In this document: in pieces, positions 6,986 to 54,157 of the stretch | Layout of the letters: every line of letters starts with the position of its first letter | Position numbering within the stretch: position 1 is the first letter of the stretch | Sequence record: JN849462.1 | Length of the DNA: 64,000 bases | Reading direction: 5' to 3' (one strand) | Notes under the pieces: generated by a model | The model's database searches: none | Told to the model about the DNA's origin: nothing | What the model saw: the letters and a program-made list of their open reading frames with translations, nothing else | Translations under genes and position numbers: made by a program

Positions 6986-7010
6986 AAAGGTAGCTTCGGC
7001 TACCTTTTTT
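6986..7010 (+). terminator. intrinsic terminator, UUCG loop
   Basis: AAAGGTAGC-TTCG-GCTACCTTT-TTT. Confidence 0.9.
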
Positions 7011-7024
7011 CGTTTTCAGAGCAA

Positions 7025-7090
7025 AAAACGGTTGCATGAAATGCTCAAAACCCCTATTATAGCTTCATCGAAACGAAAGAGGAAAACGAA
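7025..7090 (+). promoter_or_regulatory. early promoter cassette
   Basis: A-tract, GTTGCATG, TATTAT, ATCGAAACGA, GAGG RBS. Confidence 0.8.
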
Positions 7091-7390
7091 ATGGATGTAA
7101 CATCAAAACTTGAATTGTCGATGAAAGAGTTCGTTGACGTTCCATACAACGAGCACAAAACTCATTCTCTTGTTGGTCAAGCAAGTGAGCACATTAACTC
7201 GTACTACAACAATCCGGGTGAAATCGTGACTTCAAACGTCATGTACGTTGAAATCAACGGTGGTATTGTGTATGCTGTAACGCACTCTAAGAGTCGCTAC
7301 CAGCTAACCAATGTGTCTCATGATGAGATTGCGCAAATGGTTAAAGCCGCAAGCGAACGCGGGATTAATATTCCGCTTTACAAAAACTAG
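7091..7390 (+). CDS. hypothetical protein
   Basis: First gene after the cassette. Confidence 0.8.
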   Translation: MDVTSKLELSMKEFVDVPYNEHKTHSLVGQASEHINSYYNNPGEIVTSNVMYVEINGGIVYAVTHSKSRYQLTNVSHDEIAQMVKAASERGINIPLYKN

Positions 7391-7451
7391 AAAAATTGCT
7401 TTAATACAAACTGATTCACTACTTTTGATTACTTTTTGAGAGAAATATATT

Positions 7452-7766
7452 ATGACTACTATCGTAAACTTCACTGCTGCAATCGAACTAACTACTAAAG
7501 CTCTTGTTGAAACTAACCGTATCGAGGGTCGTTTCTACAACTCACGCATCGGTCACGAGCAAGGTGAGCAAGCGAAAACTGACGCAGTTCGAGCGTTCAA
7601 AGTAATCGACAACAAAGTATATGCTGAAACTCGCAACTGCGTGTTCCATCTTCGCAATCTGTCTGCTCTTGCACTAGCTGACTTCAACACTATCAACGCA
7701 CCAGTGTACATGAAGAAAGCTGATGCTGAGTTCGACGAAATGGTTAAAGCAGCCCTGTTCTCGTAA
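7452..7766 (+). CDS. hypothetical protein
   Basis: RBS GAGAG, ATTATG start. Confidence 0.8.
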   Translation: MTTIVNFTAAIELTTKALVETNRIEGRFYNSRIGHEQGEQAKTDAVRAFKVIDNKVYAETRNCVFHLRNLSALALADFNTINAPVYMKKADAEFDEMVKAALFS

Positions 7767-8218
7767 TGTACCCGAAGAATAAAAGCTATTATGACTTGAT
7801 GTATCTTGACATCGCCAAGTCATTTGCTAAAAAAAGCACCTGCAAGCAGAAGCAAGTAGGTGCTGTCATCGTCAAGAATGATCGCATTATCTCACACGGT
7901 TACAATGGTACGCCGTCAGGTATGCTTCACTGTAAAGATACCGCTGACTTCGGTGATCTAACCCACCGTCAATGGTCAGAAATTCACGAGATTCATGCTG
8001 AACAAAACGCGATTTGCTACGCTGCACGTGCTGGCATATCTACTGAAGGCGCGACTATGTACGTCACAGCGTCGCCGTGTCATAACTGTGCCAAGCTGAT
8101 AGTCGCGGCTGGCATCAAAATTCTCATTGTAGGTTCGATTTACAGCGGTTCGCAACCCGATTGGTGGCACTGGCTACGTGATCGCGGTGTGAAAGTTATT
8201 ATGTTCGAAGACGAATAA
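7766..8218 (+). CDS. cd: dCMP deaminase
   Basis: STC..KQVGAVIVK, GYNG, HAEQNAI, SPCHNC zinc-deaminase motifs. Confidence 0.92.
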   Translation: MYPKNKSYYDLMYLDIAKSFAKKSTCKQKQVGAVIVKNDRIISHGYNGTPSGMLHCKDTADFGDLTHRQWSEIHEIHAEQNAICYAARAGISTEGATMYVTASPCHNCAKLIVAAGIKILIVGSIYSGSQPDWWHWLRDRGVKVIMFEDE

Positions 8219-8272
8219 TGTTTAATATAAGTAATTCGGACTTATAATAGAGCTTTAACAAGAGAGAAACAT

Positions 8273-9199
8273 ATGAAAAGTACAATGTTTTTGAACAACA
8301 TCACATGCATCGACCATGCATGGGTTGATGATATGGGTGAAATGAATGGTAATAGCTACAATCTATGTGTAGAAATTACCGGTGAAGTTGACGAAACTGA
8401 ACAAGTCGTTATTGATTTCAGTGGTTGTAAGAAAGCAATCAAACATCTTGTGGATGATTCGGAATTCGCCATTGATCATCGTCTAGTCGTCGTTGACGGG
8501 TTTAGTGATGCAGTTCTTTCTCAAGTCGAAGATCGACTACGCATTCAAATCGACACGCCGGTCTTCCATGCAGTGTCTACGGTTGACGACTGGTATCAAG
8601 TCATCAAGCCGAGCGAATTGATTGAAGCCGACTTTAAAATCCCTAGCGATTCTCTGTACATGTCGTATGTTACTGAGTATCTTGAAAATATGCTACTCGA
8701 ACAGCTACGTAAACAAGGCTATCCTGTTACACACGTCGCTGTAGAGCTTTCAGAGTCGTTTGACTTACCATCATGGGCAAACAGTCACGTTGAATTCAAT
8801 TACGCTCACGGACTGCGTTCAAGCACATCATACGGATGTCAGAACATTGCACACGGTCACCGTTCATTCATTGCAGTAGATAAGCACTTGAATAGTAACG
8901 GTCGCAAGGTACTGAAGCGCATTGCTAAAGAAATGAGCGGTTATATTGCTTGGTCAGAAAACATTCGCAAAGAAGATGAAGTGTCTTACACTTCAAAGCG
9001 CGGCAACTTCTACTTGAGACACAGCAATATCAAAGTAATCCCGACTGAAACTACAGTCGAAAATCTAGCCAATTACATTGCAACTACATACGAAGAAGAG
9101 TTTCAACGAATGGGCGTTCAGCGTGTGTGGGTATCTGAGGGTCTATCAAAAGGCTCAGTTGTAGACATCAAAATCAACAAAGAATTGCTCTATAAGTAA
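8273..9199 (+). CDS. queD: QueD-like 6-carboxytetrahydropterin synthase, two T-fold domains
   Basis: C-terminal domain FNYAHGL...CQNIAHGH...PTETTVENLA; degenerate N-terminal repeat IDHA...NGNSY...IDH; next to folE. Confidence 0.8.
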   Translation: MKSTMFLNNITCIDHAWVDDMGEMNGNSYNLCVEITGEVDETEQVVIDFSGCKKAIKHLVDDSEFAIDHRLVVVDGFSDAVLSQVEDRLRIQIDTPVFHAVSTVDDWYQVIKPSELIEADFKIPSDSLYMSYVTEYLENMLLEQLRKQGYPVTHVAVELSESFDLPSWANSHVEFNYAHGLRSSTSYGCQNIAHGHRSFIAVDKHLNSNGRKVLKRIAKEMSGYIAWSENIRKEDEVSYTSKRGNFYLRHSNIKVIPTETTVENLANYIATTYEEEFQRMGVQRVWVSEGLSKGSVVDIKINKELLYK

Positions 9200-9218
9200 T
9201 CAACAAATTAATGTTTAG

Positions 9219-9250
9219 TAGCACGTCTCGGCGTGCTATTATTGTTTTCT
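9219..9250 (+). terminator. hairpin with U-rich tail between queD and folE
   Basis: TAGCACGT-CTCG-GCGTGCTA then TTATTGTTTT. Confidence 0.5.
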
Positions 9251-9267
9251 ATCAATGAGGAAATAGA

Positions 9268-9942
9268 ATGTTAGACAAAAATAAAGTAGATCCAGTACTT
9301 GGACAAAAAGTTGAAGCGCATCTTCGCAAAATCGGGATGCACACGCCGACTGTTGAAAACGGTCTAACTGATGATGAAAAGAAAGCTATTCTTGAAGATC
9401 GTTTCACTGACATCATGCAAGCTCTTGGTCTTGACTTATCAGACGATTCATTAGTTGATACTCCGAAGCGTTGGGCTAAGATGATGGTTAACGAGCTTAT
9501 GAGCGGTCTGTCGCCAGATATGTTCCCGAAATGTACGGCTGTAGACAACAAAATGAACTACGATCAGATGGTTTGTGAAAAAGGTATTACTGTTCTTTCA
9601 CAATGTGAACATCACATCGTAACAATCGACGGCTTTGCCACAGTTGCATACATCCCGAAGAAAAAAGTTCTTGGTCTGTCAAAAATGAATCGCATCGTTG
9701 AGTACTTCGCTCGACGCCCGCAGATTCAAGAGCGTCTGACTGTTCAAATCGCTGAAGCACTGAAATTCATTCTTGAAACTGACGACGTAGCGGTGATGTT
9801 AGACTGCAAACACTATTGCGTCAAAGCACGCGGTGTTGAAGATAACAATTCAAGTACTGTTACAAGTCATCTTTCAGGTGCATTTAGAAATGAACCAGAA
9901 GCACGAGCGGAATTTATGTCTCTTGCTCGTTCACAGGCGTAA
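9268..9942 (+). CDS. folE: GTP cyclohydrolase I
   Basis: TPKR, SQCEHH, GLSKMNRIV, RRPQIQERLT, HYCVKARG, AEFMSL. Confidence 0.96.
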   Translation: MLDKNKVDPVLGQKVEAHLRKIGMHTPTVENGLTDDEKKAILEDRFTDIMQALGLDLSDDSLVDTPKRWAKMMVNELMSGLSPDMFPKCTAVDNKMNYDQMVCEKGITVLSQCEHHIVTIDGFATVAYIPKKKVLGLSKMNRIVEYFARRPQIQERLTVQIAEALKFILETDDVAVMLDCKHYCVKARGVEDNNSSTVTSHLSGAFRNEPEARAEFMSLARSQA

Positions 9943-10615
9943 CGTACCAATCTTTGAACTTAGCCGATGTGTATTTTACGCATCGGTTATACACAGTCAC
10001 ATTAGTGGTATCATTAGCTTCGGCTGCTAATCGAGACGACTCAAACACCCCGTTTGGTGTGTGGAATAGATACTTCGATTGTGGGTTTTGACTCCCGACT
10101 TTAGACTTAGCGAGCTTTCGCTTATGTTCTTCAGTTTTTGTCGTGCCCTTCAGAACACCTTTACTCTTCGCAACATATTCACCGCGAAGGTATCGTTCGT
10201 CGTCAACTCGAATGTATTCAGTTTCACCAGTAGCAATGCATATCGCAGCAAACTTACCTATATGATGCTTTGCAGCATCTTTTCTGGCATCTTTTGTCAT
10301 CGACTCAAACAACCTAGAGTTCATCTTGAACTCGCGTTGCTGTGAGTTGTTCGACATATTAAATGCTGTTAGTGCAAACTTCAGCCGATGTTTCAAGTTA
10401 CCATTGAACATCTTAGCCAATAGCAAATGAGCTATATAATGCTCACGTGCTGTCAATCGCACTAGGTTATTTGATTCATCACTACCACCCGCACATTTAG
10501 GTAAAATGTGATGTTTTTCGCTATAACCGTCTGGTGTGTTTTGAATTCGATTCTCGATTAGAGAAATGTACCATTTTGTGTATTTGTTTAGTATAAGATT
10601 GTCGTGTGTTAACAT
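9914..10615 (-). mobile_element. free-standing HNH homing endonuclease (MobE-like HNH with NUMOD3/IENR1-type C-terminus)
   Basis: EKHHILPKCAGGSDESNNLVRLTAREHYIAHLLL; KTEEHKRKLAKSK; GVFESSRLAAEA; antisense inside the cluster. Confidence 0.88.
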
Positions 10616-10648
10616 TGTACTCTCTTTAAATAAGCATTACTGTGTTAA

Positions 10649-10656
10649 TATTTATA
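10649..10656 (-). promoter_or_regulatory. T4-type late promoter for the HNH gene
   Basis: Perfect TATAAATA on the - strand, then an AGAGAG RBS before ATG 10615. Confidence 0.75.
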
Positions 10657-10676
10657 ATTTTAAGACGAGGTTCACA

Positions 10677-12053
10677 TTGATCATTGAATACGTTATGTCT
10701 GCGACGGGTCATGCCCGTCTCGGTGCAGCACATAAGCTAATGGACGTAGTTGACACGTCCTATTTGCGCGATATTCTAAATGCAGCGCAAGATCTCGACG
10801 GTGTTCACAAAATCAGTATGCTGTACAACGCATATACTGAAAAGAAAGTCGGTCATCAAATCAATGACTTGTTTGGCGATTCTGTCTACAAGGTACACGT
10901 CGATTCGGGTGGTCTACAGATAGTCAACTTGGGTTTAGAGAATACGCCAGAACTTCGTAAAGCAGTTTACGAGAATCAAGCAGAATCTGGCGATATTGGC
11001 ATGTGTTTTGACGAAATCCCGTTGCACAACGAAGCAAAGGGTGGTGGCGCTGCTCGTATCAACACGAAAGACAAGGTCTTCATGTATGATCTAGCGTACA
11101 AGTACGGCGTCAAAACAGGTAAGAACATTCGCGCACAAATCGAAACTTATATCGAGAAGGGTAGCAAATGCAAACCGTATATCATCTTACAAGGCAACTC
11201 AGACGACGACTTTAAAGCATTCAGTGACGGGATTATGTCTCAACTCGAAGGCGTTGAAGATCACATTGCTGGTTGTGCTGCTGCCGATACATGCATTGGT
11301 AATGGCGTACGTGAGTCTATCGACATGATGAGCGTCATTCCGAAACTCAACATCCCAGAGAAAGCAAAGAAATCAGTGCATATGCTGGGAGTTGGCTCAG
11401 TTAAACGTCTATTGCCTGCTGTAGCACTTATCAGAAGTGGTTATTTTGGTGATGACTTTCATATCAGCTATGACTCATCAACGCATACTGGATGTCTGAC
11501 TAACCGAGAATACACAGACAAGCTTGGTCGCCGTCGTAAAATCTCAGGTCACGGAATTATGAAAGATGGTAAGAAATTGCCTTCTCGTGAGCTTGATGAA
11601 ATGCTAGATGAAGTGTGGGGTCGATTCGGTCATACTCTACCGCGTAGCAAAGAAGAGTTCAAGGAATTCGCGACACGTCTGTGGTTGAAAGAACTCGACA
11701 AAGAAACAATGACTGACGAAGATATTGTGTTTGAAGTTGCTTGCAACTTGTGTATAATCTTATCACAAGTCAACAACTTTCAAGCGATTATCTCTGAAAC
11801 GTTTGACTTGAATACGCCAAAAGCTGCTGATTTGTCAGCGTTCTTCGGTGGTTCTATTGAGAAAAAAGAGCCGCAAGAGGGATTCAAGAAGTGGTCAGCG
11901 ATTCGTCGTCTTGATGTTCTTGATAAACTACTTGACGTTAAAACTATCGAAGCATATGATCGCTGGCACAGTAGCTATGTTGATAGACTACCGTCAATGC
12001 GCATTCGTCGCGGCACAACTGCTGAATTCCCAGCTTTCAAAGAACAAGAATAG
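10677..12053 (+). CDS. dpdA: TGT-fold 7-deazaguanine DNA transglycosylase (DpdA-like)
   Basis: VDSGGLQ, CFDEIP, ILQGN, HMLGVG, SYDSS correspond to TGT/DpdA motifs; lies in the queD-folE-queF-queC cluster; probable TTG start at 10677 after GAGGT. Confidence 0.8.
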   Translation: MIIEYVMSATGHARLGAAHKLMDVVDTSYLRDILNAAQDLDGVHKISMLYNAYTEKKVGHQINDLFGDSVYKVHVDSGGLQIVNLGLENTPELRKAVYENQAESGDIGMCFDEIPLHNEAKGGGAARINTKDKVFMYDLAYKYGVKTGKNIRAQIETYIEKGSKCKPYIILQGNSDDDFKAFSDGIMSQLEGVEDHIAGCAAADTCIGNGVRESIDMMSVIPKLNIPEKAKKSVHMLGVGSVKRLLPAVALIRSGYFGDDFHISYDSSTHTGCLTNREYTDKLGRRRKISGHGIMKDGKKLPSRELDEMLDEVWGRFGHTLPRSKEEFKEFATRLWLKELDKETMTDEDIVFEVACNLCIILSQVNNFQAIISETFDLNTPKAADLSAFFGGSIEKKEPQEGFKKWSAIRRLDVLDKLLDVKTIEAYDRWHSSYVDRLPSMRIRRGTTAEFPAFKEQE

Positions 12054-12071
12054 CGCCTTCGGGCGCTCTTT
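12052..12071 (+). terminator. UUCG hairpin, probable terminator
   Basis: AGCGCC-TTCG-GGCGCT-CTTT. Confidence 0.65.
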
Positions 12072-12082
12072 ATGAGGTAAAC

Positions 12083-12991
12083 ATGAGCAATTATGATCAA
12101 GTTTCAGCTATTGCTGCTGAACATTTAGGTAAAAAAGCTGGCGATTACAGCGATTTCGTTGACATCGTAGAAGTTCGCCCTGATTTACTCGTGCCAATCC
12201 CGCGTGAACTGAATCGAACTGACTACGGTATCACAAATGAAGACTTTGCAGGGTTTGATACGTGGCATGGCTTCGAAGTTTCTGCACTGACTGAACAAGG
12301 TCTGCCTGTATCAGGCATGGCTAAAGTAGTGTATCCGAGTGATTCACCGAACATCGTTGAAAGTAAATCAATGAAACTGTACTGGAACAGCTTCAACATG
12401 GCTAAAGTCGCTGCGACTCGTGCTGAAGTGAAAGATGCAATTGAAGCAATCGCGTCGCGTGATCTATCTGAAGTCATCGGTGCGCCTGTTCAAGTAAGTT
12501 TCTTCACTGAAAAACTAACTCAACCGCATGGTATGACTGGCTTTGCTGAACTCGACAAATATGTTTCTGAATCGACTGTGTTTGACTCTGAGAGTGGTGC
12601 TGACGCTGATCTATTGCAAGAGTCGCACATCAAGAAACTGAAAGTGTTCACGCCTAATCTGCGTTCAAACTGTCGCGTTACACATCAACCCGACTTCGGT
12701 GATTTGTACGTATACATGAGCGGCGAAAAGACTCCGACTGTTGATAGTCTGATGCAATACATCGTTTCTTTCCGCAAAGAGAATCATTTCCATGAAGAAT
12801 GCGTTGAAATGATTTACAAAGCGTTGCTTGACAAGTTCGACCCGACTGAACTGATGGTCACAGCGTTATACACACGTCGCGGTGGATGGAATATCTGTCC
12901 AGCACGAGCGACACACGAAGAGCTATTGCCAGAAGCACTTGGTAGTAAATCTGTCTCGCACACTAACGGAAGTTGTTTATTCCGTCAGTAA
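12083..12991 (+). CDS. queF: NADPH-dependent preQ0 reductase, two-domain type
   Basis: VESKSMKLYWNSF QueF motif, CRVTHQPDFG, ENHFHEECVE, YTRRGG. Confidence 0.93.
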   Translation: MSNYDQVSAIAAEHLGKKAGDYSDFVDIVEVRPDLLVPIPRELNRTDYGITNEDFAGFDTWHGFEVSALTEQGLPVSGMAKVVYPSDSPNIVESKSMKLYWNSFNMAKVAATRAEVKDAIEAIASRDLSEVIGAPVQVSFFTEKLTQPHGMTGFAELDKYVSESTVFDSESGADADLLQESHIKKLKVFTPNLRSNCRVTHQPDFGDLYVYMSGEKTPTVDSLMQYIVSFRKENHFHEECVEMIYKALLDKFDPTELMVTALYTRRGGWNICPARATHEELLPEALGSKSVSHTNGSCLFRQ

Positions 12992-13046
12992 TAAGAGCTA
13001 TGATGAGTGTTCAATTGTGAGCACTCATATACTTGAGAGGTTAAAA

Positions 13047-13763
13047 ATGAAAGTAGTATCTGTTCTAAGCGGTGGCTTGGACTCAACAATCCTTACGTAC
13101 AAACTAGTTGACGAATTCGGCAAAGACAATGTGTTTGCATTATCGTTCTACTACGGTCAAAAACAGTCGATTGAGCTAGAAAAAGCTAAATTGACTTGTC
13201 AAAAGCTCGGCATCGAGCATCGTCTAATTGACATTTCATTCTTAGGTGAAGTCGTCGCGCCAGTCTGTGCGAATATCGCTGGTTCAGATGTTGCTATGCC
13301 AACTATTCAAGATGTTCTCGGTGACCCTCAGCCACCAACTGAAGTTCCATATCGTAACATGCTATTGAACACAATCGCGTTCTCATTCGCACAAGCAAAT
13401 GGTTGTTCAGCGGTGTTTACGGGTATTCAAGTGCATGACGCATATGGTTATTGGGACTGCACGCAAGATTTTCTTGACGGTATGAACAAAATTTCAGCAC
13501 TGAATCGTCAACACGAAATCACATTACATGCGCCGTTCGCTCAAATGTCAAAAGCTGATGAAATCGCTATCGGTGTTGAGCTTGGTGTGCCGTTCGAGGA
13601 TAGTCTGACTTGTTACGACCCGAACGAAGCTGGCGAAAGCTGTGGTAAATGTCCGTCGTGTGCTGAACGCATCATGAACTTCGGCAAAGCTGGTATAGTC
13701 GATCCTGCGCCTTACTCAATTGACATCTCGTGGAAGCAAGTATTTGCTAAGGCAGGTCATTAA
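13047..13763 (+). CDS. queC: 7-cyano-7-deazaguanine synthase
   Basis: SGGLDST, YGQKQ..E, VPYRN, YWDC, TCY...CGKCPSC; start moved to ATG 13047 after GAGAGG. Confidence 0.95.
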   Translation: MKVVSVLSGGLDSTILTYKLVDEFGKDNVFALSFYYGQKQSIELEKAKLTCQKLGIEHRLIDISFLGEVVAPVCANIAGSDVAMPTIQDVLGDPQPPTEVPYRNMLLNTIAFSFAQANGCSAVFTGIQVHDAYGYWDCTQDFLDGMNKISALNRQHEITLHAPFAQMSKADEIAIGVELGVPFEDSLTCYDPNEAGESCGKCPSCAERIMNFGKAGIVDPAPYSIDISWKQVFAKAGH

Positions 13764-14371
13764 TGTGTGGATTATTTGCTGCTAGAAGCAAGCAAGAGCT
13801 TATTGAATTGTCAAAAAGCAACATTCATCGTGGTTCGCGTACTCACTCTGTGAGTACGTTTAAGAACGGTCACGTGACGATTCATAAGTTTACAGGCGCG
13901 TTTGACGCGACGAATGTTCCCGATAGTGCAGATTTTTATATTTGTCACGTACAAGCACCGACGGGAACAAGTGCTCAAGCACATCCCGCTATTGTGACAA
14001 TCGAAGAGAATGGCCAATTACACGATTCACACGTGTGGCACAATGGCATTCTTAAAGATCATTACATGAAAAAGCAGTCTCAAGATTGGGATACTGCACA
14101 CATTGCCGAAGCAATTTGCTACGGAAAACTAAACGAACTTGACGGTACATTTGCTTGTTTTCACTTCATAAACGGTCATTTGCGTGTATTTCGCAATGAA
14201 ATCAGCCCGCTGTTCATGAGTGAAGACGGGACATCGTTTAGCAGCACGCGAACGATTCTCACGCCAGAGCATGTTGAGCCGAATAGAGTGTTTAACATCG
14301 ACTTGAAGACGTTTAAAATGTCAATCGTAAACGAGTTCAAGACTCTAGAAAACCCCTATTTCTTTATGTGA
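13763..14371 (+). CDS. class II (Ntn) glutamine amidotransferase, stand-alone
   Basis: N-terminal MCGLF, HRG, CHVQAPT, WHNG, LDGTFA; TAATG-coupled to queC. Confidence 0.85.
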   Translation: MCGLFAARSKQELIELSKSNIHRGSRTHSVSTFKNGHVTIHKFTGAFDATNVPDSADFYICHVQAPTGTSAQAHPAIVTIEENGQLHDSHVWHNGILKDHYMKKQSQDWDTAHIAEAICYGKLNELDGTFACFHFINGHLRVFRNEISPLFMSEDGTSFSSTRTILTPEHVEPNRVFNIDLKTFKMSIVNEFKTLENPYFFM

Positions 14372-14379
14372 GGTAAAAC

Positions 14380-14655
14380 ATGATTGAAGTGAATATCGAC
14401 GACTTGCTTAAAAACGGCAAAGTCACATTTGAATTTGAGAAAGCAGACGGTACTATCAAGACAGTGACTGGTACGCGCAATCTCGATTTCATCCCTGCTG
14501 AGTTTCACCCGAAAGAAAAGCCTTTAGCTGAAGGCGAGACGAAGCCAGAGAAAACAGAAAAGCAAAAAGCAACATGCGGTTATTTCGATCTTGAAGCTAA
14601 CGGCTGGCGCTCATTCAAACGTGCAAATCTTCGCGAAGTAAAATCGTTTGTATAA
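14380..14655 (+). CDS. WYL_2/DUF2693-like small SH3-fold protein
   Basis: VTFEFEKADGTIKTVTGT...YFDLEANGWRSF. Confidence 0.7.
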   Translation: MIEVNIDDLLKNGKVTFEFEKADGTIKTVTGTRNLDFIPAEFHPKEKPLAEGETKPEKTEKQKATCGYFDLEANGWRSFKRANLREVKSFV

Positions 14656-14848
14656 CGACCCGTTTGCTGAACAATTGCGCGTCGGACAGTGGATTCTTCA
14701 CAAGAAGACGGGTAATGTGTATATAGTAACGAGTAAAGGCAAACTCAAGTTCGACGGTAAATGGTATAATTCTGTCACTTACACGAGCGAACTAGGCGAC
14801 GTATATACAAGAACATACGACGACTTCCGCGGGTTTGAACTAGCATAA
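14648..14848 (+). CDS. DUF1653-like small protein
   Basis: HKKTGNVYIV...VTY...VYTR..DDF. Confidence 0.55.
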   Translation: MYNDPFAEQLRVGQWILHKKTGNVYIVTSKGKLKFDGKWYNSVTYTSELGDVYTRTYDDFRGFELA

Positions 14849-14953
14849 GTCCGCACTGAGAGACGGTCGCAGTGCGCTGATAAAACAGCGATCAACAAAT
14901 AGGAGTGATGGGCCCTAACTCATCAATTCATCAACTTTCGTGAGATCTATATA

Positions 14954-15160
14954 ATGGCTACAGATAAAGAATTACTCAATGACGTAAACAACTTCTGGAT
15001 TGGTTGGGATCAACGCGGTCCCGAGAGTCGAGATTACGATGTTGAGCACGGTAATATGCGCAAGAAATGTCGTGAGTTTGAAGAGCGTAAGAAAGCTACA
15101 GACGAACGCATTGCAGCATTTGAAGAAACACGAAACAAATACAAAAGACGAGAGAAATAA
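14954..15160 (+). CDS. hypothetical protein
   Basis: 68 aa, TAATG-coupled to gp31. Confidence 0.7.
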   Translation: MATDKELLNDVNNFWIGWDQRGPESRDYDVEHGNMRKKCREFEERKKATDERIAAFEETRNKYKRREK

Positions 15161-15498
15161 TGACACTTAAAGCATACGCAATGGGCGAACAAATCATCAT
15201 CGACACAAAAGCTGTTAAAGAAGGTGAAGAAATCAAATCCGAAGGCGGCATCGTTCTAGGACGTGCAACACAAGGTGAAGTTCCGCTACACGGTATCGTA
15301 ATTTCTGTCGGTGAAGACGTTGACCAAAACGTCATCAAAGTCGGTGATAAAGTTCTATTACCACAAGGCAATATGAAAAACGTTCCAGATCCACGCATTA
15401 TCGCAGGTATCATGAAGCCAGATGATCAAGACCGCGCACTCTGGGTACACACTCACTACAAAAATATCGCGGCTGTGTATCGCGACGACGAGGAATAA
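15160..15498 (+). CDS. gp31: gp31 GroES-like co-chaperonin for capsid assembly
   Basis: GGIVLG..QGEVP...SVGEDV...KVGD..LP.G...NVPDP...HYK, colinear with T4 gp31. Confidence 0.92.
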   Translation: MTLKAYAMGEQIIIDTKAVKEGEEIKSEGGIVLGRATQGEVPLHGIVISVGEDVDQNVIKVGDKVLLPQGNMKNVPDPRIIAGIMKPDDQDRALWVHTHYKNIAAVYRDDEE

Positions 15499-15499
15499 G

Positions 15500-15889
15500 A
15501 TGAACGACAACTTACGAATGATTGAAGTTTCAGCAACTGGTTACTACAGCAACGCTACAGCGGCACATACTTGTTGGGTGACTGCTGAATTCGTTGAGAA
15601 GTACGAAGACGAAATCAGAAAGTTCGATTTCTACTTCAGCGACCTTGATGGTAAGCATTCTGAAACTCATGCTGACATTGAAATCTACTCCGACCAACGT
15701 GATATGGCATTGGCGTGGAGCGAATCTCAAGGTGAAGATTGGTCAATTACTGAAATCATGTTCGACCAAGATGTGTTTGAAGATGCTGATATTGAAGAAA
15801 TGATCAGCCTGAACGAAGACATGAACAACACAATTGAAGTCAAGACACAAACAGTCATCACAATCGGTACTGAAACTATCGTTGTATAA
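15500..15889 (+). CDS. hypothetical acidic protein
   Basis: RBS GAGGA; start moved to ATG 15500. Confidence 0.8.
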   Translation: MNDNLRMIEVSATGYYSNATAAHTCWVTAEFVEKYEDEIRKFDFYFSDLDGKHSETHADIEIYSDQRDMALAWSESQGEDWSITEIMFDQDVFEDADIEEMISLNEDMNNTIEVKTQTVITIGTETIVV

Positions 15890-32751: not shown

Positions 32752-33777
32752 ATGTCACACGCAATCTTTATCGGACGTTTTCGTCCATTCCACAACGGTC
32801 ATCTATCTGCAATCACTCAAGCATTCGACGCGCTTGATTTAGATAAGATGACTATCCTAATCGGTAGCTCTAACCGACATCGTTCAGTTAAAAACCCATT
32901 CGTGTTCGAAGAAGTACGCGATATGATGGGTGTTGCATTGCCTGATCACATTCGAAGCAAAGTTCGCTTTGTACCGCTTGGTGATTACGCGAAAGACGAC
33001 GTTTGGCAGTCAAATGTTCGTTCTCGTGCAAGAGGCGCAACTCACATCGTTGGTTACGACAAAGACGAAAGCAGCTACTACCTCAAGTTATTCCCTGAGC
33101 TAAAGCTATTTCAACCTGAACCAGTGAAGATGTATAACAAAGTTATCTCTGCAACTGACTTCAGAGAACTGTACTTCAGTGAGATTCTACTGAATCACCC
33201 TGTAATGTCTGGTCTTATCCCTAAAGAAACGATGATGTTTCTTGATAACTGGAGCAAAACAGAGTTTTTCACTGAAATGAAAGCTGAATACGATAGCTCA
33301 GTGCGCGAAATCGAGAAGTTTAAAGACTATCCTTACCAAGGTCACTTGAATATCGCGTGTGCTGATAACGTTGTTACGTGTGCAGGTCATGTCCTTCTCG
33401 TTGAGCGTAAGTTCAACCCAGGCAAAGGCTGTTTAGCATTACCTGGCGGGCATAAGCATGAGAAAGAAACATTCTTAGATGCTGCGATTCGTGAACTGCA
33501 AGAAGAAACTAATATCAAAGTACCTGAAAAAGTACTGCGTGGCTCGCTTGTGGGTGAAAAGATGTTCGATAATCCAAATCGCTCTTACCCTCACACTCGC
33601 ATCACAATGGTATATCACTTGAAAGTGCAGCCAAACCCAGACAACACTTTCCCGAAAGTGAAACCTGCTGATGATGCTGTATCAGCGAAATGGTATCCAC
33701 TGAGTGAAGTGCGCGACATGCAAGAACGTTTGTATGACGATCACTACCAAATCATTCAGTATTTCACTGGCATCTAA
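32752..33777 (+). CDS. natV: bifunctional NMN adenylyltransferase / Nudix ADP-ribose pyrophosphatase
   Basis: GRFRPFHNGH, KNPF, SAT; Nudix box GGHKHEKETFLDAAIRELQEET; DDA. Confidence 0.94.
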   Translation: MSHAIFIGRFRPFHNGHLSAITQAFDALDLDKMTILIGSSNRHRSVKNPFVFEEVRDMMGVALPDHIRSKVRFVPLGDYAKDDVWQSNVRSRARGATHIVGYDKDESSYYLKLFPELKLFQPEPVKMYNKVISATDFRELYFSEILLNHPVMSGLIPKETMMFLDNWSKTEFFTEMKAEYDSSVREIEKFKDYPYQGHLNIACADNVVTCAGHVLLVERKFNPGKGCLALPGGHKHEKETFLDAAIRELQEETNIKVPEKVLRGSLVGEKMFDNPNRSYPHTRITMVYHLKVQPNPDNTFPKVKPADDAVSAKWYPLSEVRDMQERLYDDHYQIIQYFTGI

Positions 33778-42821: not shown

Positions 42822-43289
42822 ATGATACGAGCACAGCAAGTTTCTCTAGACATTGACCAATGGCTTGAATATGCCTTGCAGAAATTCGAAGACGCTAAAT
42901 CTCAATATCTCAAAGCCGTTGCTACAGCGAATGCATTCTCATGGAAGAAAGAAGAACCAGTTCTGGTGAAAACGTTCTTCATGGAATACGGTGGTGATAG
43001 CGATCCCCGTTATCTGCTTGAGTTTTGGTCTGAAGTCAATGCATATATTGACGAGCACACGAGCGACGACTGGCAGTTTTGCTATATAGAAGAAAACGAG
43101 TATGACGCCAACGATGACCCGTATGAAGATTACGAAATGCTATCGACTTCTATTGCAGTATATGCAACGGTCAAAGGCGATGATTACACGCAGTCTGAAG
43201 AGTATCGAGCATTGAAAGATGACGTTGATCGTTGTCTAGAGCATCTATTAGAATGCAAGGAAAATTTCAAGCGGGAGTTTAACAAATGA
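42822..43289 (+). CDS. hypothetical acidic protein
   Basis: GAGGG RBS. Confidence 0.8.
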   Translation: MIRAQQVSLDIDQWLEYALQKFEDAKSQYLKAVATANAFSWKKEEPVLVKTFFMEYGGDSDPRYLLEFWSEVNAYIDEHTSDDWQFCYIEENEYDANDDPYEDYEMLSTSIAVYATVKGDDYTQSEEYRALKDDVDRCLEHLLECKENFKREFNK

Positions 43290-43612
43290 GCCAAATGGAA
43301 TACAATAAAGGTGTATTGCATCCAACTAGCAAGTCGATTGAAGAACTAGCTGAAGAGCTTGTGACAGATTTACCAAGCTATTACGATTCTAAAGTCGAAT
43401 ATCTCTTGGATAATCATGTCGATTATGGGCTAGTTTTGGTTTGTGACAAGCCTTACACTGTCACTTTTGAAGCCGAACGCGAAGACCTATATCATCTTGC
43501 ACGTGCTGACGTTCAAGAAAACGGTGATATTCATTTCGAGACGTATCACTATAACGGTGGTGCTCATTGGACTGAAGTAGTAGAAGATGCATTACGTGAG
43601 GTTAAGCAATGA
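43286..43612 (+). CDS. hypothetical protein
   Basis: ATGA overlap. Confidence 0.8.
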   Translation: MSQMEYNKGVLHPTSKSIEELAEELVTDLPSYYDSKVEYLLDNHVDYGLVLVCDKPYTVTFEAEREDLYHLARADVQENGDIHFETYHYNGGAHWTEVVEDALREVKQ

Positions 43613-43781
43613 TCATTCTTGAGTTCATTTTTACTCTATTAGCCGCATACGCAGGGAACTACATCGGTCGCTATATCTCGGTGAATAATGGCACATACAC
43701 TAAGCCGAATCCGTTTGCGTTTGAAAATCTCAATCACGAAGTCAATTGGGTATTGGCGATTGTACTAATGGTGATTATCTA

Positions 43782-44366
43782 ATGGCAAAACTTTACTACA
43801 ATTATTCCGCTATGAACGCGGGTAAATCTGCACAGTTGTTACAAGCTGCTCATAACTACGAACAGACTGGTTCTACTGTGTGGTATTTTAACTACTATCA
43901 AGACGACCGTTTTGGTGGTGTTGGGAAGATCTCTAGCCGTATTGGCTTAGAGCATGACGCTGTGCTATACAGTGAAGAGTTCGATTTCATTGACTATGCT
44001 TTATTTGAGCGAGTTCCAGCCGCGATTTTCGTCGATGAATGTCAGTTCCTTACTGAGAAACAAGTACTTCAGCTTGCTACGCTGGTGGATCAGTACAACA
44101 TACCAGTGCTTTGTTACGGTATACGCAATGATTACATGGGTAATTTGTTTGCGGGTTCTGCTGCATTGATGTGTCATGCCGATGAGATTCGCGAAATCAA
44201 AGCTATGTGCTCAGTCGAGGGTTGTCATAAGAAAGCAACTCATATCGGCTTGTACATCGGCGGTGAGCGTGTAACACAAGGTGAACAGACATATATTGGT
44301 GATACTGATTACCGTAGTATGTGTCGTAAGCATTTTCTAAGGGATGCAAATGGACAGAGTACTTGA
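43782..44366 (+). CDS. tk: thymidine kinase
   Basis: YSAMNAGKS, ISSRIG, VDECQFL, LCYG.RND..G.LF.GS..L, C..C, YRSMCRKH. Confidence 0.96.
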   Translation: MAKLYYNYSAMNAGKSAQLLQAAHNYEQTGSTVWYFNYYQDDRFGGVGKISSRIGLEHDAVLYSEEFDFIDYALFERVPAAIFVDECQFLTEKQVLQLATLVDQYNIPVLCYGIRNDYMGNLFAGSAALMCHADEIREIKAMCSVEGCHKKATHIGLYIGGERVTQGEQTYIGDTDYRSMCRKHFLRDANGQST

Positions 44367-44652
44367 ATTGGAGTCGCAGATTGCGGCTCTTCAACGGGAA
44401 TTACAAGACGAGCGTAACCGATGTCGTCATACTCGCGTTACATATGAGTTCAAGTCGAATACGGGTAATTACGATCCGCATTCTGATTGCTACTGGAATG
44501 AAGTGCAGTGCATTGACTGCGGTTCTCGTATGCACTTCGACTCAGATGATGACAATGATAATTATCGCCTTGCTGGTGTAATCGGTTCTGAAGGTAAAGT
44601 TGAGAAACACGATTACGAAACATATTTGAAAGTGAAAAAGGAACTAGAATGA
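44350..44652 (+). CDS. hypothetical protein
   Basis: GYD/Cys-containing ORF overlapping the tk end. Confidence 0.7.
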   Translation: MDRVLELESQIAALQRELQDERNRCRHTRVTYEFKSNTGNYDPHSDCYWNEVQCIDCGSRMHFDSDDDNDNYRLAGVIGSEGKVEKHDYETYLKVKKELE

Positions 44653-51192: not shown

Positions 51193-51572
51193 ACGATAAC
51201 GAACTAAAAGGCTTACCAACTGACATCGACTTGCTAGAAACAGCAATTCAGTTGCTCAAAGCAAAACCTTATGATCAGCGCCGTTTAGAGCATTTAGCAA
51301 ATGTCATGACTCGCGTTCAGCCTCAAGTGCTCAAGCGAAAAGCTGAACTTGATTGCTGGGCAGTGAAGCCATTCACCAGAATGGACATGAAAAAGCTACA
51401 AATCGTACCAACGAACGGTGTGTTTTACCAAGATCAATTGATTCACACGTACGATAAAGACGCTCAAGCGTTTCACATGCTTGATTATTTCAAAGAGAAC
51501 GACATCAAATCATACGGTGAGTTTCTTGACCATCTTAGCGAATTGGAGAATAAAGTATGCACGCAGGTGTAA
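51189..51572 (+). CDS. hypothetical protein
   Basis: ATGA overlap. Confidence 0.8.
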   Translation: MNDNELKGLPTDIDLLETAIQLLKAKPYDQRRLEHLANVMTRVQPQVLKRKAELDCWAVKPFTRMDMKKLQIVPTNGVFYQDQLIHTYDKDAQAFHMLDYFKENDIKSYGEFLDHLSELENKVCTQV

Positions 51573-52537
51573 TTGGCAAGTTCAACAACTATCATCAAGG
51601 TCATTTCAAATTGATCAAGTTCGCGCTATCGCTTGCAGACAAAGTAACTGTTTTGCTTTGCACTGAAGACAGCGATCCAATTCCAGTTGAAACACGCATG
51701 AAATGGATGCACCAAGATTTCGGTAATCGTATTCGCATTAGTGTAATCTGCCCGAGTGATGAAAATCTCTCGAACAAATCAGAGTCTGATCGCGAAGTAT
51801 CAAAGCAGTGGGCTGCTTTTATCGACGAGCGTTACCCTGAAATTGATGCATTCGTTGGTTCTGAGCAATACATCAATTACTGTGCTGAGTACGGTAACTT
51901 TGACGGAATCATTTACGATGAAGCGCGAGAAATCACACCTTGCTCAAGCACTTCGGTTCGCGAGAACGATTCTCACGAGTTCTACAGCCCGAGCGCACAA
52001 CAAGACCGAGTACGTCGAATTGCATTCATCGGTCCCGAGTCTTGTGGTAAGTCATGGAACGCAGCATCAATCGCAGCCGCTAACGGTTATGAACTTGTAC
52101 TCGAAGCAGCACGCGACATCATGAGCGACAATCACTACACTGAACACGATGTTCTTGAGTTCGCGATTGCACAAACTGCACGAATCGAAGCAACCGGTAA
52201 AGAAAGTGACACTGTAATCGTTGATTCTTCAGCTATTACGTCGGCAGTTTACAGTCAGTTTCAATTCAATCAATCATCGGTTCTTCTGAATGCATTAGCT
52301 GCTTTTGAAAACATTGATGCTTATGTACTCTTCCGACCAAACTGTGAGTTTGTTCAAGATGGTACACGCACACAGACGCAAGAAGACCGCGAACGCTGGT
52401 TTGAACTTGCAAAGTCTATGCTTCTTCGATTGAACAAGCCATTCTTGATTGTTCAGAAAGGCAATGATTGGGAAGAACGTTTACACGAAACGGCAAGTCA
52501 TGTTTCACTACTGAGAGATAAAGTAAAATGGGTATAA
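51557..52537 (+). CDS. nadR: NadR-type NMN adenylyltransferase / ribosylnicotinamide kinase (no HTH)
   Basis: GKFNNYHQGH (HxGH), SSTSVR, then P-loop GPESCGKS, FVQDGTR. Confidence 0.88.
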   Translation: MHAGVIGKFNNYHQGHFKLIKFALSLADKVTVLLCTEDSDPIPVETRMKWMHQDFGNRIRISVICPSDENLSNKSESDREVSKQWAAFIDERYPEIDAFVGSEQYINYCAEYGNFDGIIYDEAREITPCSSTSVRENDSHEFYSPSAQQDRVRRIAFIGPESCGKSWNAASIAAANGYELVLEAARDIMSDNHYTEHDVLEFAIAQTARIEATGKESDTVIVDSSAITSAVYSQFQFNQSSVLLNALAAFENIDAYVLFRPNCEFVQDGTRTQTQEDRERWFELAKSMLLRLNKPFLIVQKGNDWEERLHETASHVSLLRDKVKWV

Positions 52538-53491: not shown

Positions 53492-54157
53492 ATGTTTGAT
53501 TTACTGTTTAACATTAACCACACTGTGTTTTCAATTGGTGATTATGCAGTGTCTGGTCTAGAACTCTGGGCAACTCTTACTGGTTTGATTTGTGTCATCA
53601 TGGCACGAATGAATATGAAGCACAACTTCACAGTCGGCATTGTGAACTGTATCGGGTTCGCAATTCTGTTCTTCCAGATTCAGTTGTATAGTGACGTGCT
53701 CTTGCAGGGGTTCTTCATTGCAATGTCGATCTTCGGCTTCTATCAATGGAACAAGCAAGGTACAGATGAAGTCAAAATCCGTTACTTGAAGATGCGTAAA
53801 TTCGCAGGTTCGATTATAGCGACGTTGATTGGTACTGCGGCACTCGCGTACTTCATCGACCCGATTATGAACTTCAGTGGTTCACTGCTTGTTACCGATT
53901 ACGTACACGCCCCTGCTGAACTCGCTGTGCAAGATGCATTCACGACTGTAGCAAGTATCATGGCGTTTATGCTCATGATTCAGCGTAAAGTCGAAGCATG
54001 GTGGTACTGGGTTGCAGTAAACGTAGTGTGCATTGTGAACTACAGCACGCAGGGCGTAATTGTAGTTGCTGCTGAATACTGCATTTTCCTAGCAAACGCG
54101 CTTTATGCAATCGTAATCTGGCATAAAGAAGGCATGAAAAACGAGGCACAAGCATGA
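53492..54157 (+). CDS. pnuC: nicotinamide riboside transporter
   Basis: Multi-TM; LELWATLTGLICV, QLYSDVLLQ, GFYQW, DAFTTV.SI.A..LM, EAWWYWVAVN. Confidence 0.92.
   Translation: MFDLLFNINHTVFSIGDYAVSGLELWATLTGLICVIMARMNMKHNFTVGIVNCIGFAILFFQIQLYSDVLLQGFFIAMSIFGFYQWNKQGTDEVKIRYLKMRKFAGSIIATLIGTAALAYFIDPIMNFSGSLLVTDYVHAPAELAVQDAFTTVASIMAFMLMIQRKVEAWWYWVAVNVVCIVNYSTQGVIVVAAEYCIFLANALYAIVIWHKEGMKNEAQA

Follow-up and report, generated by a model that had tools for sequence, protein, structure and literature searches.

The stretch of DNA analysed here, called the window, comprises 64,000 nucleotides of the sequence record JN849462.1 (Vibrio phage phi-pp2, a member of the species Schizotequatrovirus KVP40). 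Within it lies a 6.1-kb block (8273-14371) that is 100% identical to positions 70273-76371 of this record, a window coordinate being the record coordinate minus 62000. An earlier note, made from the letters of the window, had described the block as a phage-borne 7-deazaguanine DNA-modification cluster, and this description is supported by the identities of the genes and by a published listing for the same phage. The six genes named there, namely queD, folE, a gene for a protein with the fold of tRNA-guanine transglycosylase (TGT), queF, queC and an amidotransferase gene, are all present on the + strand. They are listed below by window coordinates, together with a gene on the opposite strand.

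8273-9199, + strand: QueD (6-carboxytetrahydropterin synthase), 308 amino acids; Pfam PTPS in two stretches (E 2.6e-10) and the listing of Hutinet 2019 (AFN37350).
9268-9942, + strand: FolE (GTP cyclohydrolase I), first step from GTP; Pfam (E 1.9e-60) and the NCBIfam equivalog NF006824 (300 bits, cut-off 202).
9914-10615, - strand: free-standing HNH homing-endonuclease gene; PHROG 655 (E 9.6e-45).
10677-12053, + strand: DpdA2, a predicted DNA guanine/7-deazaguanine transglycosylase of 458 amino acids; the listing of Hutinet 2019 (AFN37353), 64% identity to the founding DpdA2 of phage nt-1, and the fold of an AlphaFold2 (AF2) model.
12083-12991, + strand: predicted bimodular QueF, the NADPH-dependent nitrile reductase converting preQ0 to preQ1; Pfam QueF_N PF14819 (E 2e-28) and QueF PF14489 (E 1.8e-20).
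13047-13763, + strand: QueC, preQ0 synthase (PP-loop ATPase); Pfam QueC PF06508 (E 9e-54, 182.6 bits, cut-off 22) and TIGR00364 (172.4 bits, cut-off 150).
13763-14371, + strand: stand-alone class II (N-terminal nucleophile, Ntn) amidotransferase-fold protein of 202 amino acids, pp2_123, PHROG 12378; family profile and AF2 fold.

The cluster is real, ordinary and already described, and the earlier note had read the sequence accurately. Supplementary Data 1 of Hutinet et al. 2019 (PMC6884629) lists for phi-pp2 the proteins DpdA2 (AFN37353), FolE (AFN37351), QueD (AFN37350), QueE (AFN37515), QueC (AFN37486) and QueF (AFN37354). The claim that the combination of enzymes is unusual or undescribed is thus not upheld, as the cluster of this very phage was already tabulated. 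Its apparent oddity dissolves because the amidotransferase gene is a constant companion of queC. The cluster has been named as core to the Schizotequatroviruses (ISME J 2025, PMC12028318), and the block is carried by 48 Vibrio phage records, 41 of which cover at least 80% of its length. The window adds no new system, and the biology of the cluster has been published. A small residue of interest is the queC-locked family of stand-alone amidotransferase-fold proteins, which comprises 318 representative clusters and 358 confirmed IMG/VR loci.

The block is very probably the Schizotequatrovirus 7-deazaguanine DNA-modification module of phi-pp2, yielding dPreQ1. The module is defined in this phage by its gene identities, folds, conserved residues and synteny, and by the absence of dpdM, a gene for methylation of the base. 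In the proposed pathway, GTP would be converted to preQ0 by FolE, QueD, QueC and QueE, the last from a gene elsewhere in the genome, and free preQ0 would be reduced to preQ1 by the bimodular QueF. Once phage DNA has been replicated, DpdA2 would swap part of its guanines for preQ1, and the resulting dPreQ1 would hinder host restriction enzymes. When phage DNA carries 7-deazaguanine bases, restriction enzymes are blunted, and other defences may be as well. Such bases are relevant to phage-host ecology in marine Vibrio and to the choice of phages for aquaculture.

The closest known systems are those of the phages VH7D, phi-Grn1 and phi-ST2 (Cui 2023, PMC10516641), which combine DpdA2, QueF and DpdM. 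They belong to the same genus and share the gene order of phi-pp2, with 86-88% DNA identity over the 6.1-kb block. The VH7D proteins FolE, DpdA2, QueF, QueC and amidotransferase (95.5%) are 92-97% identical to those of phi-pp2, and QueD is 76.5% identical. For this group of phages, the activities of QueF and DpdA2 and the presence of dPreQ1 in the virion were shown by experiment. Virion DNA contained, per 10^6 nucleotides, 816 dPreQ1 and 35 mdPreQ1 in phi-Grn1 and 668 and 44, respectively, in phi-ST2, while dG+, dPreQ0 and dADG were all 0; the methylated form is made by DpdM (Cui 2023, PMC10516641). Phage 6E35.1a has the same gene set and order as phi-pp2, but it is a more distant phage and lacks the homing endonuclease between folE and dpdA2. 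In its DNA, a 295-Da nucleoside, which was assigned as dPreQ1, takes the place of approximately 15% of dG (ISME J 2025, PMC12028318). Phage nt-1 has QueD, FolE, QueC and the amidotransferase in common with phi-pp2 (74-93% identical), but differs in carrying ArcS2 (DUF5591) between queD and folE and in having no QueF. Low amounts of dPreQ0, dADG and dG+ were found in nt-1 DNA (Hutinet 2019, PMC6884629; Cui 2023, PMC10516641). The QueF activity, the preQ1 preference of DpdA2 and the dPreQ1 of the virion would carry over to phi-pp2 from published work in which orthologues with 92-96% identity were studied.

DpdA2 contains exactly the motifs quoted in the earlier note for the TGT-fold protein, namely DSGGLQ (76-81), ILQGN (170-174), HMLGVG (235-240) and YDSS (265-268). 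Its assignment as a DpdA is borne out, and the subfamily is DpdA2 according to the homology to nt-1, the listing of Hutinet 2019 and the AF2/Foldseek fold. The 458-residue protein itself has no Pfam, NCBIfam or PDB match by sequence search, and none of its 430 homologues at E <=1e-3 carries a Pfam domain. The founding DpdA2, VPFG_00171 of nt-1 (YP_008125322), was retrieved at E 5.9e-189 with 63% identity over 99% coverage (64% globally). The phi-pp2 protein is 92.4% identical to the DpdA2 of VH7D and 88.9% identical to the 6E35.1a protein. An AF2 model built on the homologue alignment reached a pLDDT of 90. Structure comparison agrees with the TGT fold, as the six best Foldseek matches in the PDB are mouse and human TGT (QTRT1) and the bacterial "DNA preQ0 insertase DpdA" 7UI4, with E-values of 1.8e-7 to 3.5e-6. 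Generic TIM barrels follow at E >=5e-4, approximately 100-fold weaker, and the TM-scores of the model are modest (0.34-0.47). Asp76-Ser-Gly-Gly-Leu-Gln81 and Asp266 are invariant in 35 aligned DpdA2 homologues. From the position of their motifs and from published work, Asp76 and Asp266 would be the TGT-type catalytic residues. In a profile alignment of the DpdA2 family with DpdA1 of Enterobacteria phage 9g (hhalign), the HxLGVG and YDS regions pair with the matching 9g motifs, at a non-significant E of 0.059; 9g DpdA1 itself has no PDB match by sequence search.

The substrate preference of DpdA2 differs between phages. The enzyme of VH7D inserts preQ1 at 2765 per 10^6 nucleotides, preQ0 at approximately 630-712 and CDG at approximately 67-95 (Cui 2023, PMC10516641), and the enzyme of nt-1 inserted preQ0, not preQ1, in E. 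coli (Hutinet 2019, PMC6884629; Cui 2023, PMC10516641). Between phi-pp2 and nt-1, identity is high for QueD (89%), QueC (93%) and the amidotransferase (90%), but only 64% for DpdA2 and 74% for FolE. Between phi-pp2 and 6E35.1a, QueD (74%) and the amidotransferase (63%) are the less similar proteins, and DpdA2 (89%) and FolE (83%) the more similar ones. Judged from these sequences, DpdA2 tracks the tailoring enzyme, QueF or ArcS2, and not the phage backbone. The identities of DpdA2 and FolE run opposite to those of the flanking genes, and therefore the folE-dpdA2(-queF) segment behaves as a module exchanged between backbones. This pattern suggests an exchange of the folE-dpdA2-tailoring module between phages. 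The DpdA2 of phi-pp2 groups with the proven or presumed preQ1 inserters. For identifying the residues behind the choice between preQ1 and preQ0, the pairing of DpdA2 with a tailoring enzyme offers a clean natural data set.

Over its full length, QueF can be aligned to the QueF of V. cholerae (3BP1) at E 3e-40, with Cys197 opposite the cysteine of 3BP1. The two-domain QueF with an intact motif and cysteine, as previously read, is confirmed by ESKSMKLY at 93-100 and by Cys197. The former fits the motif for binding of NADPH, E(S/L)K(S/A)hK(L/Y)(Y/F/W), quoted in Cui 2023 (PMC10516641). The protein scores below the NCBIfam equivalog cut-off of TIGR03138 (224 bits versus 293.45) and is a divergent phage member. 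Its function is nevertheless supported, because the 93.7%-identical QueF of VH7D complemented an E. coli delta-queF strain, restoring queuosine (Q) (Cui 2023, PMC10516641).

Several points weigh against dPreQ1 as the product in phi-pp2. The nucleoside data come from relatives, and none are published for phi-pp2 or KVP40 in the literature examined. Asp76 and Asp266 of DpdA2 were not mapped significantly onto the catalytic aspartates of TGT by profile alignment. Furthermore, the level of modification in phi-pp2 is unpredictable because its relatives range from approximately 0.2% of G (phi-Grn1, phi-ST2) to approximately 15% (6E35.1a).

Whether dPreQ1 would be methylated depends on DpdM. VH7D gp081 is DpdM according to its cysteine positions (45, 49, 52, 53, 120, 129, 146 and 222), a near-exact match to Cui 2023 (PMC10516641). 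While VH7D, phi-Grn1 and phi-ST2 encode DpdM and contain traces of mdPreQ1, phi-pp2 has no dpdM anywhere in its record. Nothing in the window matches VH7D gp081, and its syntenic site is empty. The counterparts of the gp081 neighbours are located at 42822-43600 and 43782-44342, are 95-97% identical and have only about 180 bp between them. This empty site (approximately 43600-43782, between the gp080 homologue and tk) is partly covered by a small annotated open reading frame (ORF), pp2_187 (43609-43782), and it is the site at which VH7D, ValKK3, phi-ST2 and phi-Grn1 carry dpdM (gp081) and gp082. In a tblastn search of 50,697 phage records, dpdM homologues were found in 20, and phi-pp2, KVP40, nt-1 and 6E35.1a were not among them. 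A scan for the cysteine motif of DpdM yielded nothing in the window and the next 50 kb. As dpdM is absent from phi-pp2, plain unmethylated dPreQ1 is predicted. In phi-pp2, a relative of gp082 with 41% identity is located after tk (44341-44649).

QueC matches the PDB structure of QueC, 2PG3, at E 1e-24 and is 95.4% identical to the protein of VH7D. It contains the motif SGGLDS (8-13) and a cysteine cluster of the form C-x10-C-x2-C-x2-C (189-205), both as described in a 2026 QueC-family preprint, and it also matches the PP-loop models Asn_synthase and NAD_synthase. A second, divergent QueC-like protein, pp2_253, is encoded outside the window (record 132822-133505; locus L002, 6822-7505). It is matched partially by Pfam QueC (E 3e-9); its P-loop is degenerate (VSGLDS) and its cysteine cluster intact. 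Hutinet 2019 (PMC6884629) gives pp2_253, not pp2_122, as the QueC of phi-pp2, and likewise for KVP40.

The 202-residue protein encoded after queC had been called a stand-alone class II amidotransferase. The fold and the N-terminal cysteine nucleophile were borne out, but the donor pocket is atypical, with a glutamine in place of an arginine. The protein alone gave no Pfam match even at E 10, and none in NCBIfam or PDB sequence searches. The family was represented by 27 homologues, and its alignment contains 26 rows (25 homologues and the window protein). GATase_7 is matched by 15 of these rows and GATase_6 by 11, and a profile of the family finds two glutaminase domains, that of GlmS (E 7e-5) and that of PurF. 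The AF2 model (pLDDT 93) retrieved PurF, GlmS/GFAT, EgtC and N-terminal domains of beta-lactam synthetase in Foldseek at E 2.8e-9 to 1e-4, with query-normalised TM-scores of up to 0.69. The modelled fold is the four-layer Ntn fold of the PurF/GlmS/AsnB glutaminase type. A BFVD fold search with the same model retrieved viral class II amidotransferases.

Invariant in the family alignment are Met1-Cys2 (26/26), Arg23-Gly24, Gln64, Asn94-Gly95, Asp110 and a C-terminal NPY motif. In the glutaminase site of GlmS and PurF, an Asn-Gly pair forms the oxyanion pair, an aspartate holds the amino group, and an arginine holds the carboxylate of glutamine. HMMER alignment to the GlmS chain 1XFF_A places Asn94-Gly95 at Asn98-Gly99 and Asp110 at Asp123, while Gln64 occupies the position of Arg73. 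Three of the four glutaminase-site positions are thus kept in the family, and the carboxylate-binding arginine is replaced by the invariant Gln64. At E <1e-30, the 318 representative clusters were found; nearly all of the best 150 are stand-alone proteins of approximately 200-230 amino acids that are matched from residue 1. Two longer proteins among these 150 have C-terminal extensions that are unrelated or unassigned.

The gene is strictly tied to queC. In phi-pp2, the stop codon of queC and the ATG of the gene share 1 nt (TAATG), and the same overlap is found in the annotated coordinates of nt-1, 6E35.1a, VH7D and phi-ST2. All Schizotequatrovirus records found have the gene immediately after queC, and it is also present in Pseudomonas phage pf16. 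Phage nt-1, which has no QueF, carries it as well (89.6% identical), and three metagenomic contigs with homologues at 33-36% identity contain the same pair. A scan of IMG/VR yielded the 358 loci with a relative of the 202-residue protein, and neighbourhoods were analysed for 80 of these and the three metagenomic contigs. In all 83, queC is the directly upstream gene on the same strand. The tailoring gene near the pair encodes QueF in 63 loci and ArcS2 in 3, and 17 loci have neither. The proposal that QueF and the amidotransferase divide one preQ0 pool is not sustained by this pattern, in which the gene follows queC alongside QueF, ArcS2 or neither. As it is present in nt-1, with ArcS2 and no QueF, and in loci without a tailoring gene, it belongs with QueC and not with a branch competing with QueF. 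A mixture of bases arising from an amidotransferase branch, as also proposed, is not seen in phi-Grn1 and phi-ST2. With a 95.5%-identical gene, these phages gave dPreQ1 and a little mdPreQ1, and no dG+, dPreQ0 or dADG.

Most likely, the 202-residue protein acts as a glutaminase-type partner giving ammonia to QueC; this assignment is judged to stand at about even chances, with Gln64 as the chief ground for caution. In asparagine-synthetase-type enzymes, ammonia derived from glutamine feeds an ATP-activated carboxylate. By this logic, the 202-residue protein, translationally coupled to QueC, would hydrolyse an amide donor, probably glutamine, and pass the ammonia to QueC for the conversion of CDG via ADG to preQ0. 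Asparagine synthetase B and beta-lactam synthetase pair the same two folds, a class II amidotransferase domain and a PP-loop ATP pyrophosphatase domain, but these are single chains with the amidotransferase first, while phi-pp2 has two genes with queC first. The protein and QueC would represent a split counterpart of this pairing, with no archaeosine branch. An N-terminal nucleophile needs a free N-terminus, and a fusion in the order queC-amidotransferase would not work for this reason. Slightly more tentative is the extension that many phage preQ0 pathways include the 202-residue protein as a sixth, so far unrecognised enzyme, which makes QueC glutamine-dependent. If so, the Gat domain of the Gat-QueC fusion proteins would supply ammonia and not be specific to G+ synthesis. 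A function for the family would complete the phage preQ0 pathway and could change the view of this domain.

Three observations stand against a glutaminase role. Since Gln64 replaces the arginine for the glutamine carboxylate, the donor may be a compound other than glutamine or may be bound differently. No QueC fusion of the family was found among the best 150 representatives. Bacterial QueC works with free ammonia.

The gene is annotated as "hypothetical protein" in GenBank. Its orthologue in 6E35.1a is listed in the supplement of the ISME J 2025 report (PMC12028318) as a hypothetical protein, PHROG 12378, in the category "Antidefense". The 2026 QueC-family preprint contains no occurrence of Gat-QueC and does not mention a class II amidotransferase partner of QueC. 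No function is assigned to the family in the literature examined, leaving aside the 2024 MMBR deazaguanine review and the supplementary tables of Cui 2023.

A related arrangement occurs in Enterobacteria phage 9g, where a class II amidotransferase module is likewise tied to QueC; the phi-pp2 QueC and the corresponding half of the 9g fusion share 25% identity. In 9g, Gat and QueC are fused with Gat at the N-terminus, the arginine for the glutamine carboxylate is kept, dG+ is the product, and DpdA1 serves as the transglycosylase. In phi-pp2, by contrast, the protein is encoded by a separate gene downstream of queC, has a glutamine at that position and shows generic similarity only to the Gat domain. 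A single polypeptide of the Gat-QueC type is not encoded by phi-pp2, in which the two parts have separate genes and queC comes first. The free amidotransferase and QueC could together be a split Gat-QueC, acting as an archaeosine synthase, and dG+ would then occur in the DNA mixed with dPreQ1, or a new derivative would be present. Both proteins share the class II amidotransferase fold and the N-terminal cysteine, 9g Gat-QueC together with its DpdA gives dG+, and Gat-QueC of Pantoea phage Vid5 appears at rank 12 of the viral fold matches. Phage nt-1 has the gene and a little dG+ (44 per 10^6 nucleotides), but this dG+ is accounted for by ArcS2, which made dG+ with DpdA2 in E. coli and would be redundant if QueC and the amidotransferase already yielded G+. 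The hhalign comparison of the family with 9g Gat-QueC covers 42 columns at a probability of 29%, no better than the match to GlmS. The residue at the carboxylate position (Arg in 9g, Gln in the family) and the gene order, reversed relative to Gat-QueC, also differ. The report on 6E35.1a gives only the 295-Da species consistent with dPreQ1. The constant linkage to queC, the dG+ value of 0 in phi-Grn1 and phi-ST2 despite the 95.5%-identical gene, and the separate ArcS2 in nt-1 argue against a role as archaeosine synthase, and this explanation is regarded as highly improbable.

Another proposal concerns the donor pocket. The protein may be an Ntn amidohydrolase acting on a deazaguanine intermediate or another amide, and not a glutaminase for QueC. 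The invariant Gln64 at the position of GlmS Arg73 would fit such a role, as would the presence among the closest folds of EgtC, whose substrate is a gamma-glutamyl compound rather than free glutamine, and the dADG found in nt-1 DNA. Nevertheless, the remaining glutaminase-site positions (Cys2, Asn94-Gly95 and Asp110) are invariant, the strict adjacency to queC, encoding a PP-loop enzyme that needs ammonia, fits the classical partnership, and the DNA of phi-Grn1 and phi-ST2 contains no extra product. An amidohydrolase is thus considered unlikely. Most improbable of all is an Ntn protein with another amide donor or a deazaguanine substrate, in which case phi-pp2 and KVP40 would carry a minor undescribed 7-deazaguanine beside dPreQ1. 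A glutamine-dependent QueC is much more likely than such a minor derivative.

The earlier note had suggested that the products are divided between DNA and host tRNA. Spill-over of preQ1 is possible, as the QueF of VH7D restored the Q phenotype of E. coli delta-queF, so that preQ1 made by the phage reaches the host Tgt. It would be a side effect and does not speak for a designed division. A stronger form of this proposal, in which phage preQ1 would go in part, or for the most part, via host Tgt into the queuosine of host or phage tRNAs and DNA modification would be secondary, is very unlikely. The phage encodes many tRNAs, tRNA-His included, but the hosts of DpdA2 phages already have a full Q pathway. 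The cluster contains a dedicated DNA transglycosylase, the VH7D orthologue of which places preQ1 in DNA, and dPreQ1 was measured in the DNA of three relatives. In 19 metagenomic loci that extend for 6 kb or more to either side, QueE, FolE, QueF, QueC and the amidotransferase occur with no DpdA2 match within reach, although such loci may hold another DpdA type, for example the unassigned 296-residue ORF in locus L053. DNA modification by dPreQ1 remains the preferred function of the phi-pp2 block.

The commonest metagenomic layout (L053, 3170-9615; similar in L031 and L067) encodes QueE, FolE, the protein of approximately 296 amino acids, a formyltransferase-like protein (PF00551, E 3.5e-5), AAA_28, QueF, QueC and the amidotransferase. 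No DpdA2 match was found in this layout, a possible DpdN-type (formyl-preQ1) cluster that would use a DpdA of a different subfamily.

Among the early pathway genes, queD encodes a tandem protein with two T-folds, in which the catalytic and zinc motif C-x4-H-G-H is present only in the C-terminal half (189-196). In the N-terminal half, Asn-Gly-Asn (25-27) replaces His-Gly-His and the cysteine is also lost, as seen in the alignment to E. coli QueD. The GenBank label of the phi-pp2 protein, a reductase, is a mislabel. The QueE gene lies outside the block and the window, approximately 79 kb downstream (pp2_282, record 154900-155781).

The HNH homing-endonuclease gene is no part of the deazaguanine pathway. 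The segment that contains it, about 748 bp long (9930-10677), is an insertion separating folE from dpdA2, and the gene overlaps the 3' end of folE by 29 nt. The segment is absent in KVP40, VH7D, nt-1 and 6E35.1a and present in phi-ST2. Compared with KVP40, folE is 93.3% identical and the aligned part of the block 98.4%. The lower identity of folE beside the HNH gene would look like the pattern expected from co-conversion around a homing site.

In phi-ST2, a further insert of 2.2 kb lies between dpdA2 and queF (L010, 5358-7516), a junction that measures 29 nt in phi-pp2. It encodes two proteins, one of 552 residues that combines a GIY-YIG domain with an Eco57I-methylase-like region, and one of 167 residues, a DUF5873 protein annotated as a DNA methyltransferase. 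The insert was considered as a location of DpdM and rejected, as it consists of these two proteins and DpdM lies approximately 32 kb away in VH7D.

The block is flanked by a dCMP deaminase gene directly upstream (7766-8218) and by a gene with a WYL_2 (Sm-like SH3) domain directly downstream (14380-14655), both in genus-wide synteny. The WYL_2 gene was not found in the more distant loci searched for it, and it was rejected as a member of the module because it is syntenic only inside the genus. A scan of 7000-15500 for promoters and terminators gave counts within about one standard deviation of shuffled controls. The sole notable terminator-like site in the block is a hairpin between queD and folE (9216-9241, + strand), with an 11-bp stem followed by a T-rich run. 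Elsewhere in the window, NAD+ salvage genes are annotated, namely NadM/Nudix (32752-33777), NadR (51557-52537) and PnuC (53492-54157); together with nadV, which lies outside the window, they correspond to the known NAD pathway of KVP40.

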